NCBI RefSeq assembly: GCF_006345805.1
Contig: NC_043009.1
Span: forward strand, 23,932,001-23,996,000
Source: Octopus sinensis
Lineage: Eukaryota
DNA: 64,000 nt
Reading direction: 5' to 3'
Shown: in pieces, positions 368 through 60,937 of the stretch
How the letters are laid out: each line of letters begins with the position of its first letter
Position numbering within the stretch: the first letter of the stretch is position 1
The notes under the pieces: model-generated
The model's input: the letters and a program-made list of their open reading frames with translations, nothing else
Told to the model about the DNA's origin: nothing
Databases searched by the model: none
Made by a program: the position numbers and the translations under genes

Positions 368-464
368 ATGAAGATGAATACAGTCTTTTACTTAACCTTG
401 ATAGCCCTGATGTTCGGTCTGGGGACATGTGCCGTGGTGAATATGGAGCCGAAGATGAATAAAG
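368..464 (+). CDS. Gene A exon 1, signal peptide of an uncharacterised secreted Cys-containing protein (245 aa spliced)
   Basis: [32 protein letters not shown] has a hydrophobic core and ends AAAG|gtaag (phase 1). It joins 3540..3752, 7098..7181 and 10053..10396 into a 738-nt stop-free ORF. Confidence 0.85.
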
Positions 465-639
465 GTAAGCACTCCTTTAGTCCAGTACAGTATAGATCAT
501 ATACGATATATATATATATATATATGCACATATATGCACACACATACATATACATGTGTGTGCATGTATACATATACATACACAATTATATATACATACA
601 CGTGTATACATACATAAACATGTGTGTATATATATAATC

Positions 640-2060
640 AAAATAAGCAACAAGAATGACTCCGGTAATTTGGTACGATCGTTTCGTACTACATCATTTT
701 ATTAAATGTTGTAAGCATTACAACAGATTTAAAATGCTGAGCACTCATCAGCCAATTATAGAGGTTTTCCATTAATAAAAAAAATTTCATATCAAGTGGC
801 AACATTATAGAGAAGGTAGATATATAGACAAAGATGTGGATTCAAATTTTATGAACATTTGAGGTAGTGGAGGCCATCAACTGACTGACTAAGATTCAGT
901 TGTTCCAGACTACTGTAAGGTTCTGAGAGGGAAGGACAAATGAAAGGAGACAATAAAGATTTTCTAATTATAGGAATGGGGTAAAGGGGATGTCAGAGCT
1001 CCATATAAGGAATTTATGTAGAAAACAGCATTGTCACAACGATTTGATGAACAGATTCGGCGTTAGGAGAACTAGGTCAATGTCAAGTGGTCACAATAAC
1101 ATTCATAGAGAATGCAGAGACCGTACAAACCCTATGCACATCATCACAACAGTTGGTCAATAAGTTTCAAGTACTTTGACACGATAGAAAAAAGGAAAAA
1201 AAAATATAAATCTAAAATTTATTCAATTTGGAGAAAAAGACTATTACTTATTATGAGTAGGCGTAGTACATTTTAACTGGGGGAAAAGCCTTATTAATCA
1301 AGTGAACATATTAGGGGTCAAAATACATACTAATAAAAATGGAAGTCAGAAAATCAAAAAGGAAGATACTCATAGGTTTAGTAGAAGTTGATATTTTATA
1401 ATATGAAGAGAGGTAATTTAGAAGAGTAAATTATTCAAATTTCATGGATAGTGAGTTGATATTAATGAATTAAAATATAGGATCTGTTGGAAATAAAATT
1501 TACTACCTGCGGATAAAAGTTAATTAGTTAGGTAAAAATATCTCAGGTTAATTATATATTAAGAAATGGGAGTGAAACAATCAAGATGAACTAAATAGTT
1601 TCCCTAAGGACATAGGATTAATACTACTTAGTACTGGAGAACATTATAAGAAAGAGGAATTTAATTCTAAGTTTGCAATGAAGTTTTTTAATCATCTATG
1701 AGTGTTAAACTAAAACCAGTATGGTATATTCGTTCCTATTTGGTTAAATATATTTTGTAAATATATCTTAGACTAATTATATATTAAGGAATGGAAGTGA
1801 GATAATCAAGGTGAACCGAGTAGTTTCTTTACGGACATAGGATTCATACTATTTAGTATTCCTACTATTTGGGATTCATACAGTTTAATTTTAGAAAAAA
1901 GAAGAATTCAATTTTAAGTTTGCAGTGAAGATTTTATTTTTATTAATGTTTATTTTTATGAAAAACCACACGGATTTTTATGGATAACACCATACAGAAT
2001 ACTGGAGCATCTAAATTAAGTACCATATTCATTTGAATCTAAATTTTCGCTGAACTTATA
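640..2060. repeat. Unclassified degenerate repeat in gene A intron 1, with an internal ~230-bp diverged tandem duplication
   Basis: Blocks shared with 9400..9880 (e.g. ctggagcatctaaattaagtaccatattcatttgaatct); 1545..1690 resembles 1775..1930; absent from the homologous intron of gene B. Confidence 0.4.
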
Positions 2061-2529
2061 TATATATATATATATATATATATATATATATATATATATA
2101 TATATATATATATATATATATATATACATATATATATATATATAATATATATATATATATTATATATATATATATATGCAAACACAATCACACACACACA
2201 TACATACATATATATTATTGTGTCTGGAGAGGATCATTCTCTTTTAGTACCTTATTATTTGACACACTCACCGGTTCGATTTCCTTTCATTTATATATTT
2301 TTTGTAAAAATCTTCGTTGCTTCTTGCAAGGCGTAACGAAAATTTTAGAAAGGATAAATAAGCAAATGAATAGAAATCGAACCGATGAGTGTGTTAAATG
2401 ATAAGGAACTAAAAGAGATTGATCCACAATTAAATACGCTTCAACACACGAATTTACATAAAGAATCTTGCGAACTAAATACAAAAACGATATATATATA
2501 TATATATATATATATATGTAAATATATAC

Positions 2530-2893
2530 TCTTTACTCTTTTACTTTTTTACTTGTTTTAGTCATTTGACTGAGGCCATGCTGGAGCACCGCCTTTAGTC
2601 GAGCAAATCCCCAGGACTTATTCTTTGTAAGCTTAGTACTTACGCTATCGGTCTGTCTTGCCGAACCGCTAATTGACGGGGTCCTAAACACATCAGCATC
2701 AGTTGTCAACACACACACACACACACATATATATACGACGGGTTTCTTTCAGTTTCCATCTACGAAATCCACTCACAGGCTTTGGTCGGCCCGAGGCTAT
2801 AGTAAAAGACACTTGCCTAGATGCCAAGTAGTGGGACTGAACCCGGAACCATGTGGTTGGTAAGCAAGCTACTTACCACGCAGCCACTCCTGC
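2530..2893 (-). mobile_element. tRNA-derived SINE family 1
   Basis: Head GGAGTGGCTGCGTGGTAAG...GGTTCAGTCCC (A/B-box-like), central (TA/CA)n and a GTAAAAGA tail; about ten copies in the window. Confidence 0.8.
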
Positions 2894-2969
2894 ATGTATA
2901 TATATATATATATATATAATATATATATATATATATATATATACATATATACATCTATATATTGAGAAT

Positions 2970-3110
2970 TTACAAAAACAAAACAAAACAAACGACAACA
3001 AACATATGTACTCGTTTAACGTTCGGGAGGTGAGAAAGTCTTTTACATTTCGAGCCTACGCTCTTCGACAGAAAGGAACACAGACAGAAACAGGGTGTTA
3101 AAGTAGAAAA
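2970..3110 (-). mobile_element. Penelope pLTR fragment with degenerate hammerhead motif (3040..3075)
   Basis: Minus strand CTTT-CTGTCGA-A-GAGC-GTAG-GCTC-GAAA-TG-TA-AAAG; same family as 8680..8800 and 60300..60520. Confidence 0.55.
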
Positions 3111-3539
3111 AAGGTTTAGTGGCTAGCGATCTATCATGGCAAAATACATACACACACACACACATACATACATACATACATATATATATATATATATATA
3201 ATATATATATATATATATATATAATATATATATATATATAAATAGTATAGACACCAGTAGATATGATTAACCTTTAGAGGTTGGCATAACACATAACTAT
3301 AGACGAGCTTCCTCACATAATTTACAATAGTGTTAACAACGAAGGTAAACAATTAGCCAACGGTCTACGTATAGCCGACAGGTTGGAAAGGTTGCATAAG
3401 AGAAATGCCTTTATCTCTACCCAATAAAAGGCCAATCATATATGAACGTATGTGACTATCGCAATACGCATACATCCATCGCATGATATATCGCCATACT
3501 TGAATAGTTAATTCGCTTTTTTTTGTATTAAATTTACAG

Positions 3540-58620: not shown

Positions 58621-58789
58621 GAGCTGCGGAAATGTGTGTCTACATTTCTGCAGCTACACACATTCACCTTCTAGACATCGTTGCAGGTGGCGCAACCTGA
58701 GTGCGTTTCTGCGCATCATCAAGAGTCATAGTGTGCCTAATAAATAACTAAAAGGTACAAATAACACTAAATGATGAAATTACTTGAAT

Positions 58790-59050
58790 CTGGGCATTGT
58801 TACTATTAACCGTCATCCCAATTGTTGTGGGTGTATTTGGAGCAGTAACAACCATGTTTGGGAGGTTTGTTGGAGAATTTGGTATTGACATGAGGATAGA
58901 ACATGCTCCTAAAACAACTGTTTGGGACAATGAGAATTTTGAGATTAGTACTTGAATGTTTAGTATCGTGAAAAGAGACACTGTGACAACAGGTTGTTGC
59001 CAGCTCTAACAAAATTACCCGAAGCAACTGAAATTAAGACCTCTGAGAAG
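58790..59050 (+). mobile_element. Old R4/RLE-type LINE 3' remnant
   Basis: VIPIVVGVFGAV...IEHAPKTTVLG; homologous to 6795..7010. Confidence 0.55.
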
Positions 59051-59146
59051 TGAAATAGCATCGGTAATATTTATCTCAGATGTAATAAATAAATAAATAA
59101 ACAAATAAATTAATAAGTAAAGGGAATAATTATTTTCTTTTTTCAG

Positions 59147-59230
59147 TTTGTATTCGAATGGGAATTTTCGACGACGAAATGCAATTCTCCTTAAGAGTAG
59201 GTAGTGCTGAGATTCTGAAGAAAACTTACC
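59147..59230 (+). CDS. Gene D exon 3
   Basis: tttcag|TT...TACC|gtgagt, 84 nt; FCIRMGIFDDEMQFSLRVGSAEILKKTY. Confidence 0.85.
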
Positions 59231-59514
59231 GTGAGTATGTTACCTGTATTTATAGCATACATACATACATACGTACATACATACATACATACATACATAC
59301 ATACATACACACTAAAATACATGCATGCATACATACATGTTAGTAAATGCATAACGAAGAATCTAGATACATATATGTATACACACAAACACACACACAC
59401 ACATATATATACGTACATACATATATATATGTATATATATATATATATATGTATACACACACAAACACACACACACACACATATACATACGTACGTACAT
59501 ACATACATATATGT

Positions 59515-60520
59515 ATGGTTCGCGGAACACCTTCGTGACATCCACCTTGCGAACGACACACCGGTCTCACGCCATTTCCGCTCCACCGGTCACTCCTTGC
59601 AACACCTGTCTGTGTTTGGTTTGTCCTTACACAGAGGCCATCCGGATTTCCGTTTGCGCCGTGAACAGGAATTAATCTTCTCTCTTCGCTCTTATACGCC
59701 ATTGGTCTCAACTCTCCCTCCTCATCTAACCCCCCTCTCCCCCCTCCTCACCTACTTTTCCCCCCCGACCCCTACTTCTCTCAGTCCTTCATCCTTTCAC
59801 CCCTACTCCCCTTCCCTTCTTCCCTCTTTCTCTCTCCTCCTTCCCTCTTCCCCTTCCCTCTGCTCCTTCCCCTCCCCTTCTCCCCCCTTCTCCCCCTCTC
59901 CATCTCTCCCCCTATCCATCTCTCCCCCTCCCTCTTTCCTTCTTCCTCCTCCCCTCCTCCCCTCCTCCCCTCCCTCCTTCCCCTCCCCCACATATCCCCC
60001 CTTCTCCCCCCTCTTCTCCCCCTCCCTCTCTTCTCCTCTCTCCACACTACACAACCCGACTTTACACATCACATCACATATGATGTGCCATACTAATACA
60101 CACACCAACTAATACATACTAATACATACTAATACATACACCAACCCTATACATACACACGTCCAGACCTCTCATACGCACTAATACTCTCTCATACACA
60201 CACACACACACACCCTTATGTTGGAGTAGGTCATTCAACCCTATTATCTCCCCTAATTTCGCTCTTGCGTCTCATGTTTGATCTTTGACTTCTGGCCGAA
60301 ATCAGATCGCCATGTTGATTCGTTAGTTACTGCACGCATTTTTTTCTCTCCTTCTTTCTGTGTTTTTTTTTCTCTGTGTATCTTTCTGTTGAAGAGCGTA
60401 GGCTCGAAACGTTAAAGACTTGTTTTATTTATATTTCCTGAGCGCCATACTAATACAATTGTTTGTTTGTTTTCCACCTGCCTTCGTCTTTTGTCTATGT
60501 TCATAAAGCTTCCCGTTATA
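59515..60520 (+). mobile_element. 5'-truncated Penelope (Neptune-like) element: GIY-YIG tail, pyrimidine-rich 3'UTR and pLTR
   Basis: FAEHLRDI...PVSRHF...GHS...RREQELIF.L; CT-rich tract 59700..60050; hammerhead-like motif 60381..60418. Confidence 0.75.
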
Positions 60521-60590
60521 TATATATATATATATATATATATCAGTATTTGCAGCAGTTTCTCTGTTATTGCATTTTTTTTATTTACAG

Positions 60591-60937
60591 GAGGAGCAAT
60601 TACCAAAACTTTCAGTTTTGATGTTGGAATTGCTAAAATCTCATTTACATTGGCAGTGGAGAATTTAAGCACCCAAAATTTTAAAGCGTGCTTCCGTATA
60701 AACTACAATGTTATATTTTTCCGTTTCTCAAATAATCTCGGCTGTATCAACAAACATTTTCTGCCCAATGAAATGAGCCCGCTCAAAAGTATAGAAGATT
60801 GGGATACAAATGATAAAATTTCTTTTGGTACACAAGATTTTGAAGTTGACGAGCCTAACAGAGTTGAGTCCCCTGGCGAAAAAACGGAAATGAAAATTCG
60901 CAAAATTGGCCGAGAGAATCCGAGAAGAGGAGAGTGA
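60591..60937 (+). CDS. Gene D exon 4 (terminal)
   Basis: ttacag|GA; GAITKTFSFDVGIAKISFTLAVENLSTQNFKACFRINYNVIFFRFSNNLGCINKHF...KIRKIGRENPRRGE*. Confidence 0.85.

Follow-up and report, generated by a model that had tools for sequence, protein, structure and literature searches.

The question raised by a stretch of 64,000 nucleotides (nt) of Octopus sinensis DNA (NCBI RefSeq assembly GCF_006345805.1, contig NC_043009.1, positions 23,932,001 to 23,996,000 of the forward strand; hereafter the window) is to which family its tandem set of spliced genes for secreted-like, cysteine-braced proteins belongs, how such an array changes, and what its products may serve for. The window DNA is eukaryotic, AT-rich and dense in microsatellites and transposons. 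The gene pieces were detected by a stop-to-stop fragment comparison between the window segments, with the junctions read directly and the exons assembled. Four related coding sets were found, all on the + strand: the complete genes A (368-10396, 245 amino acids (aa)), B (19803-30717, 233 aa) and D (51274-60937, 244 aa), and the partial copy C, position 368 being the ATG of gene A and position 60937 the stop codon of gene D. Each complete gene consists of four exons, the introns are all GT-AG and in phase 1, and exon 3 is of 84 nt throughout. The conceptual proteins A, B and D are 100% identical to the O. sinensis RefSeq Gnomon models LOC115218588, LOC115218374 and LOC115218502-X2, respectively; the genes are already publicly annotated, and the system is not of a new kind. 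An initial annotation, made from the letters of the window, had described the same three spliced genes and partial copy, together with the retained exon phases, the 84-nt exon, the TATA box and the polyadenylation context, all of which were recovered in A, B and D. It had also called the family unrecognised and fast-evolving. On the evidence of profile and cysteine alignments, the array proteins are a divergent octopod clade of DUF4773 (PF15998), and the array evolves by birth and death with the exchange of single-exon sequence; this identity and this course of evolution are regarded as established with high confidence.

Relation of the array proteins to DUF4773

The word-indexed homologue searches gave matches limited to Octopus proteins and two unnamed transcript clusters. 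The exhaustive HMMER search, in which a profile of seven octopus sequences was compared with 1.84 billion representatives, returned 20 proteins, the majority of them octopod paralogues (O. bimaculoides, O. vulgaris, O. sinensis and Argonauta hians). The same profile matched a protein of the starfish Patiria (P0017, E 7.4e-13), a protein of the oyster Ostrea (P0024, E 1.3e-5) and the transcript-derived proteins P0019, P0020, P0021 and P0025 (E 7e-12, 1.1e-11, 3e-9 and 2.9e-5, respectively), whose scores against PF15998 are 514 bits for the starfish protein, 173 bits for the oyster protein and 33-37 bits for the transcript-derived ones, the Pfam gathering threshold for PF15998 being 27 bits. By hhalign, residues 85-189 of protein A were aligned to columns 3-118 of 120 of canonical DUF4773 (E 3.7e-4), and all six cysteines of the type-I proteins (the body type of A and D) fell on invariant canonical cysteines, namely C85/C3, C94/C12, C95/C13, C104/C28, C165/C93 and C183/C112 (protein A/canonical). 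The O. bimaculoides orthologues bear the UniProt name 'DUF4773 domain-containing protein'. The profile link, the cysteine alignment and this label together point to a divergent DUF4773 clade and not to an unrecognised family. The loose resemblance to DUF4773, which had been suspected from the cysteine spacing, was correct by both the profile search and the alignment of cysteines, while the word 'unrecognised' did not survive the RefSeq models and the UniProt label; DUF4773 itself is a conserved but not a characterised family. What speaks against the assignment is that Pfam, at E <= 10, gave no PF15998 match of any kind for A, B or D. The close relatives P0002 and P0003 have sub-threshold PF15998 matches (15.6 and 18.7 bits, respectively) that cover positions 2-113 of the 118 of the profile, and P0009 and P0011 score about 15 bits.

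The octopus and the Pfam domains are of similar length (about 105 aa and 118 aa, respectively), their profiles align end to end, and the ACxR and LGCF/I motifs occur in both. However, the octopus proteins are devoid of four of the ten canonical cysteines (C5, C10, C65 and C77), those of type II (the body type of B and C) of two further ones, and the octopus core is strongly cationic. The octopus domain is also single and stands between an acidic spacer and a tail, whereas there are six domains in tandem in the starfish protein and two in that of the oyster. The Logan-derived proteins P0019-21, P0025 and P0053 (L008-L012; runs SRR8281683-95) show the octopus layout in an extreme form, with a spacer of net charge -19 to -23 and a core of +15 to +27, and pass the Pfam DUF4773 threshold; they form a bridge between the octopus clade and canonical DUF4773.

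The array proteins begin with an N-terminal hydrophobic segment of signal-peptide-like composition (h-region at residues 6-17, small residues at -3 and -1), followed by an acidic spacer, the cationic core of about 105 aa and, usually, an acidic tail, and are likely to be secreted. AlphaFold2, applied to 19 sequences, predicted the core (81-190) as a nine-strand antiparallel meander with a predicted local distance difference test (pLDDT) of 81-91, the spacer as a low-confidence helix, the tail as disordered, and a helix at the N-terminus. The residues C85, W87, C94, C165, G182 and C183 are invariant in 19/19 sequences, while C95 and C104 are both present in 16 and both absent in the other three, and this joint presence or absence argues for their pairing; the core is presumably braced by two or three disulfides. 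The cysteine frame C-x8-C(C)...C...GC is present in the window proteins, and the layout described previously is supported, with the signal-like segment first, then the acidic spacer, then the variable cysteine-braced core. The cores of B and of A and D are indeed barely alignable, with 23-31% identity, and outside the type of protein A the 19 sequences are 16-33% identical to it.

The charge is distributed along the chain in a regular manner. In all 16 members compared the spacer is acidic (isoelectric point (pI) 4.1-5.1), the core basic (pI 8.4-12.0, net +3 to +27) and the tail acidic or absent, and the total flank charge is related to the core charge by a Spearman coefficient of -0.91, a value that is not corrected for phylogeny and is to be discounted to that extent. 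An anionic propiece joined to a cationic peptide is the design of antimicrobial peptide precursors, such as defensin-type prepropeptides. The octopus proteins have the same order of a signal-like, an acidic and then a cysteine-braced cationic part, and their acidic and basic charges covary among the members. However, the sequence and the fold are unrelated, a beta domain of 105 aa takes the place of the cationic peptide of 20-50 aa, an extra acidic segment follows the core, and the spacer/core junctions (...LKVMK|CSW, ...CAKMR|CSW, ...SGIH|CSW) carry neither a dibasic nor a furin-type RXXR motif. Therefore the 'prepro' reading given in the initial annotation is an analogy and not a demonstrated maturation route. 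The structure comparison was likewise unfavourable: Foldseek searches of both models against the PDB gave best E values of 0.04-0.08 (FAIM-NTD, with a template modelling (TM) score of 0.5 on the target) and no structural analogue suggesting a ligand, and the PDB sequence search with the family profile had zero matches. The lipocalin/FABP-like and sialidase-like readings were rejected, the FABP and neuraminidase-blade Foldseek matches being noise. The Pfam, AlphaFold and Foldseek checks proposed earlier yielded in this way a predicted nine-strand core, with neither PF15998 on A, B and D nor a significant PDB neighbour.

Exon-wise evolution of the array

The ratio of nonsynonymous to synonymous divergence (dN/dS, by Nei-Gojobori) is 1.06 and 0.81 for two O. 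sinensis/O. bimaculoides orthologue pairs (dS about 0.13-0.14) and 0.67-1.11 for the paralogue pairs. The genome-wide values of animals are usually far below those of this array, and the term 'fast-evolving' is therefore justified. The core-coding exons change almost without constraint, or at an accelerated rate, round a fixed Cys/Trp/Gly scaffold; with few sequences, relaxed constraint and positive selection are inseparable over the whole core.

The exons of one gene do not share one history. Exon 2 has been conserved better than the sequence on either side of it (90.6% nt identity between A and D, 80.8% in the flanks), its copies are mutually 88-92% identical, and the dS of the type-I genes is a mosaic of 0.03-0.10 in the spacer part of exon 2 versus 0.26-0.43 in the core; on these values exon 2 has evidently been homogenised among the type-I genes. 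The 5' module of gene A (106-598, +) is common to gene B (19541-20031) with 93.5% identity, rising to 98% in the promoter and exon 1 core (200-470), and A and D differ in exon 1 by a dS of 1.38, so that gene A has a type-I body behind a type-II 5' end. It was a recent conversion or recombination that put the type-II promoter and exon 1 on gene A. Exon 3 of the type-II genes is more diverged than its flanking introns: between B and C its identity is 50% (42/84) versus 77% (364/474) in the introns (Fisher p = 1.9e-6), and the corresponding values are 46% versus 74% for B and the downstream gene E and 56% versus 81% for C and E. Since divergence in this exon exceeds that of the introns, neutral decay does not account for it, and accelerated change or exon replacement would yield such a pattern. 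Taken with the relic state of copy C, the frameshifted tail of gene D and the transposon insertions described below, these data show an array in the course of birth and death, with the sequence of single exons exchanged between its members.

Conserved signal or spacer exons, faster core exons and an exon divergence above that of introns are the pattern of the conotoxin and snake venom phospholipase A2 (PLA2) genes. The octopus family is likewise tandem and expanded, with dN/dS near or above 1; its signal exon and exon 2, which encodes the spacer, are likewise more conserved than the core exons, and one exon is likewise more diverged than the introns, although in the octopus this is true of the type-II exon 3 alone. 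The octopus genes have no homology to those of either venom system.

The alternative that survives best is that most copies in the window are dispensable and drift neutrally to pseudogenes, with a few members elsewhere, such as the skin-mucus paralogue considered below, remaining functional. Two results count for it and against the reading of an actively diversifying array: a dN/dS near 1, found in orthologues and paralogues alike, is equally expected of drifting, dispensable genes, and exons 3 and 4 of the type-I genes have diverged about as much as their flanks. The decayed copy C, the displaced tail of D, the defects of exon 1 of the downstream gene F as assembled (indel, stop and GC donor), and the insertions of a long interspersed nuclear element (LINE) and of Helitron-like sequence within the array are of the same tendency. 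However, the open reading frames (ORFs), splice sites, phases and the 84-nt exon have been kept in the two O. bimaculoides orthologues as well as in A, B, D, E and F, four cysteines, a tryptophan and a glycine are invariant over 19 highly divergent sequences, and the behaviour of the exons, with exon 2 conserved beyond its flanks and the type-II exon 3 diverged beyond its introns, is unlike neutral decay. A transcript is known for an orthologue-level member, the gene order is the same in O. bimaculoides, and the indels of D and F stand in short homopolymers and may be assembly errors. Neutral decay of most of the array is on balance considered unlikely, and the reading of intact genes whose core exons change rapidly is preferred.

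Gene models, extent of the array and long-range joins

The TATA box TATAAATA of gene A (239-246, +) is 129 nt 5' of the ATG; such a box stands 122-129 nt upstream of the ATG in A, B and D, and an AATAAA is found 3' of every stop. Exon 1 of gene A (coding part 368-464, +; product XP_029644342.1 / LOC115218588) encodes the signal-peptide-like segment and ends in phase 1, exon 2 (3540-3752, +) the acidic spacer and beta strands 1-2 (C-S-W...G-E-C-C), the 84-nt exon 3 (7098-7181, +; phase 1-1) core strands, and exon 4 (coding part 10053-10396, +) the remaining core (ACFRI...LGC) and the acidic tail NGNENSLIWPKDAEKQ, which runs to the stop codon and is followed by an AATAAA at 10584. A reverse-transcriptase fragment (5009-6598, -) is situated within intron 2 of this gene. 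Gene B has its TATA box at 19674-19681 (+), exon 1 at 19803-19899 (+, coding part; product XP_029644004.1 / LOC115218374), exon 2 at 25542-25727 (+), the 84-nt exon 3 at 28685-28768 (+) and exon 4 at 30383-30717 (+, coding part), with the tail NQNENSLKWDHDA before the stop and AATAAA at 30734 and 30779. Its intron 1 contains, at 20217-21438, direct and inverted blocks of 200-420 bp with an identity of about 99.5%, which are due either to a rearrangement of very recent date at this place or to an artefact of the assembly.

Gene D comprises a TATA box (51152-51159, +), exon 1 with a type-I signal-peptide-like segment (coding part 51274-51364, +; product LOC115218502 isoform X2), exon 2 (56571-56783, +), the 84-nt exon 3 (59147-59230, +) and exon 4 (coding part 60591-60937, +), with an AATAAA at 61122. 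A 1-nt deletion in an A-run near 60880 has put its tail out of frame; the ancestral tail NGNENSQNWPRESEKR (NGNENSQNW) is readable at 60883-60930 in a different frame, and in the O. bimaculoides orthologue of D the tail is still in frame. The ending NENS..W, attributed to the proteins of the cluster in general, consequently fails for D.

Copy C is a relic. It was so classified because exons 2 and 3 are all that was found of it, its invariant tryptophan is lost, and it is bounded by a LINE upstream and PIF1-helicase fragments downstream. Exon 2 (42390-42611, +) is of type II and has AG/GT sites, and exon 3 (43290-43373, +) is of 84 nt; in phase 1 both have an open frame, and the splice sites of both are good. 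Permissive tblastn and blastn-short searches found neither an exon 1 nor an exon 4. The similarity between 28593-29153 and 43201-43818 was rejected as a dispersed repeat, being exon 3 of B and C plus the flanking introns. The LINE immediately upstream of C (36449-41500, -) is full-length, with an intact 1019-aa ORF2 (endonuclease, reverse transcriptase, zf-RVT) and ORF1-like ORFs; a degraded LINE of the same family, 83% identical to it, is located between A and B (13942-18710, +). The Helitron-like PIF1-helicase ORF fragments (47482-48662, -) lie between C and D, near the expected site of C exon 4. A dispersed repeat of about 440 bp, probably a short interspersed nuclear element (SINE)-like element, occurs in at least 10 copies in both orientations, with 70-92% identity and mostly adjoining (TA)n or (CA)n microsatellites (2490-2924, 11092-11604, 21766-22214, 34019-34457, 42796-43205, 46091-46530, 46890-47325, 49194-49366 and 50346-50787 among them). 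Rfam had no match anywhere in the window.

The splice junctions of the models are supported, at the level of sequence orthology, by the 977-nt transcript contig L005, which codes exactly for LOC106876301, a family member of O. bimaculoides. On the O. bimaculoides genome this contig falls into four aligned blocks of the same sizes as in the window genes, the 84-nt exon included; its 5' end precedes the ATG by 83 nt and follows the box equivalent to the TATA box of gene D at a distance of about 35-40 nt, and its 3' end is just past an AATAAA. A spliced transcript with such junctions, the want of which would have told against the models, thus exists in a related species. A point of the opposite sign is that no contig was found to encode exactly A, B, D or the RefSeq isoform X1 described below, a genome record being the sole match; the models therefore have transcript support through orthology, and through such evidence as RefSeq may have used.

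The array does not end with gene D at 60937, since the next 47 kb downstream contain at least three more genes (E, F and G); no family exons were found in the 10 kb upstream of A. Positions in the flanking DNA (L001) are given as the window coordinate minus 41273. Gene E (LOC115218383, type II) is downstream of D, gene F (type I) downstream of E and gene G (LOC115218395) downstream of F, so that the order of body types is I-II-II(relic)-I in the window and II-I-(G) beyond it; the window takes in the first half of this octopod-specific array. The order D-E-F-next is also kept in O. bimaculoides, and the array is therefore older than the split of O. sinensis and O. bimaculoides. For gene E, RefSeq has two isoforms with a one-residue difference, which comes from NAGNAG-type tandem acceptors 3 nt apart (L001 38470 / 38473). 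In exon 1 of gene F (L001 47955-48040) the O. sinensis assembly has a 1-nt indel that leads to the stop, and a GC donor in place of GT, and the RefSeq isoform X3 starts at an internal methionine within F exon 2; the O. vulgaris protein CAI9731751 is an intact F including exon 1.

Two annotated proteins connect distant members of the array. In O. sinensis it is the RefSeq isoform X1 of LOC115218502, in which exons 1-2 of D are followed, over 50 kb (L001 10001-60278) and with gene E skipped, by exons 3-4 of F. In O. vulgaris it is CAI9731750: its exons 1-2 are A-like, its exons 3-4 do not differ from those of the F orthologue CAI9731751, and its gene record of 102,975 bp matches the A-to-F span of 101,184 bp in O. 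sinensis. Such cassette joins are possible because every intron is in phase 1 and any join stays in frame. The joins could be either real long-range cassette splicing or an annotation artefact arising from the 88-92% identical exon 2 copies. The cassette reading, in which splicing over 50-100 kb connects modules of a promoter and exons 1-2 (A, D) with F exons 3-4, is improbable in our estimate; if true, it would give chimeric secreted proteins, with the signal-like segment, the spacer and the first hairpin from one copy and the remaining beta domain from another.

The same observations admit the second alternative, namely that the array is partly one transcription unit with variable 5' and shared 3' parts. 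The joins occur in two independent annotations, the O. vulgaris record agrees in span with the O. sinensis array from A to F, the tail of D is frameshifted, and exon 1 of F is broken in the O. sinensis assembly. Clustered protocadherins and UGT1A are variable-first-exon loci. As in these, several promoter and 5'-exon modules of the octopus stand upstream of exons that could be shared, and all the junctions are phase-compatible; two variable and two shared exons per module would be involved. However, every octopus module also has its own 3' exons, and the joins are those of annotation. The near-identical copies of exon 2 could yield chimeras in short-read assembly or homology-guided annotation, a transcript contig for a chimeric product was searched for and not found, A, B, D and E each have a complete model of their own, and the F of O. 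vulgaris is intact with its own exon 1. A partly common transcription unit is accordingly given a small chance.

Expression context and possible role

The records of expression concern relatives of the window genes. The skin-mucus proteome of O. vulgaris contains the DUF4773 paralogue A0A0L8GLC6, at 0.14-fold and 0.46-fold in senescent animals (PMC11431876). At its N-terminus this paralogue agrees with the family member P0014 in 28/31 residues, and the same part is similar to exon 1 of A and of B. In an oyster single-cell study, a DUF4773 gene is among the markers of macrophage-like haemocytes (PMC12064177), and in a locust study the most abundant transcripts of the embryo's secretory pleuropodia include a DUF4773 one, beside lysozymes (PMC6966819). 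The literature searched by gene, UniProt, PF15998/IPR031941 and run identifiers gave only these octopus mucus, oyster and locust DUF4773 records. To the disadvantage of a role in mucus, the products of A, B and D were absent from the supplements of two octopus mucus proteome studies.

The initial annotation had suggested a lineage-specific effector of the venom gland, skin or immune system. A lineage-restricted tandem family is supported, and the skin is a reasonable guess, because a paralogue is reported in the skin mucus. That the array encodes toxins of the posterior salivary gland acting on prey, with a hypervariable mature region, is very improbable, since in spite of the signal exon and exon 2 being more conserved than the core exons, of one exon outrunning its introns and of the cysteine-braced cationic core, the literature searches by gene and accession identifiers found neither salivary-gland expression nor proteomic evidence nor any other sign of the venom gland, at the protein level a family member is on record in skin mucus only, and the DUF4773 relatives of oyster, starfish and locust come from non-venom contexts.

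Of the roles considered, extracellular binding or defence at mucosal surfaces is the likeliest, but it can be offered only as a guess, possible but rather doubtful. According to it, the array proteins would be released into mucus or another extracellular fluid, where the cationic beta domain may bind anionic targets, e.g., microbial surfaces or mucus polymers; the acidic flanks would mask the charge of the core within the same chain until release or binding, and the rapid change of the core would reflect an arms-race or recognition role. The explanation as a whole, which takes in identity, evolution, secretion and role, may as a compromise between its firm and its weak parts be called somewhat probable.

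Apart from the role, the locus clearly illustrates, on a local scale, how conversion acts on single exons and how an exon can outpace its introns. DUF4773 is a widespread metazoan secreted cysteine-rich domain, the reported settings of which are all barrier, immune or secretory, and the octopod array is a compact set of strongly diversifying natural variants with an unusual charge-balanced layout. Such a set of variants, together with this layout, makes the array a practical entry point to finding the binding target of DUF4773, and cephalopod biology gains in it a candidate family for mucosal defence or recognition.

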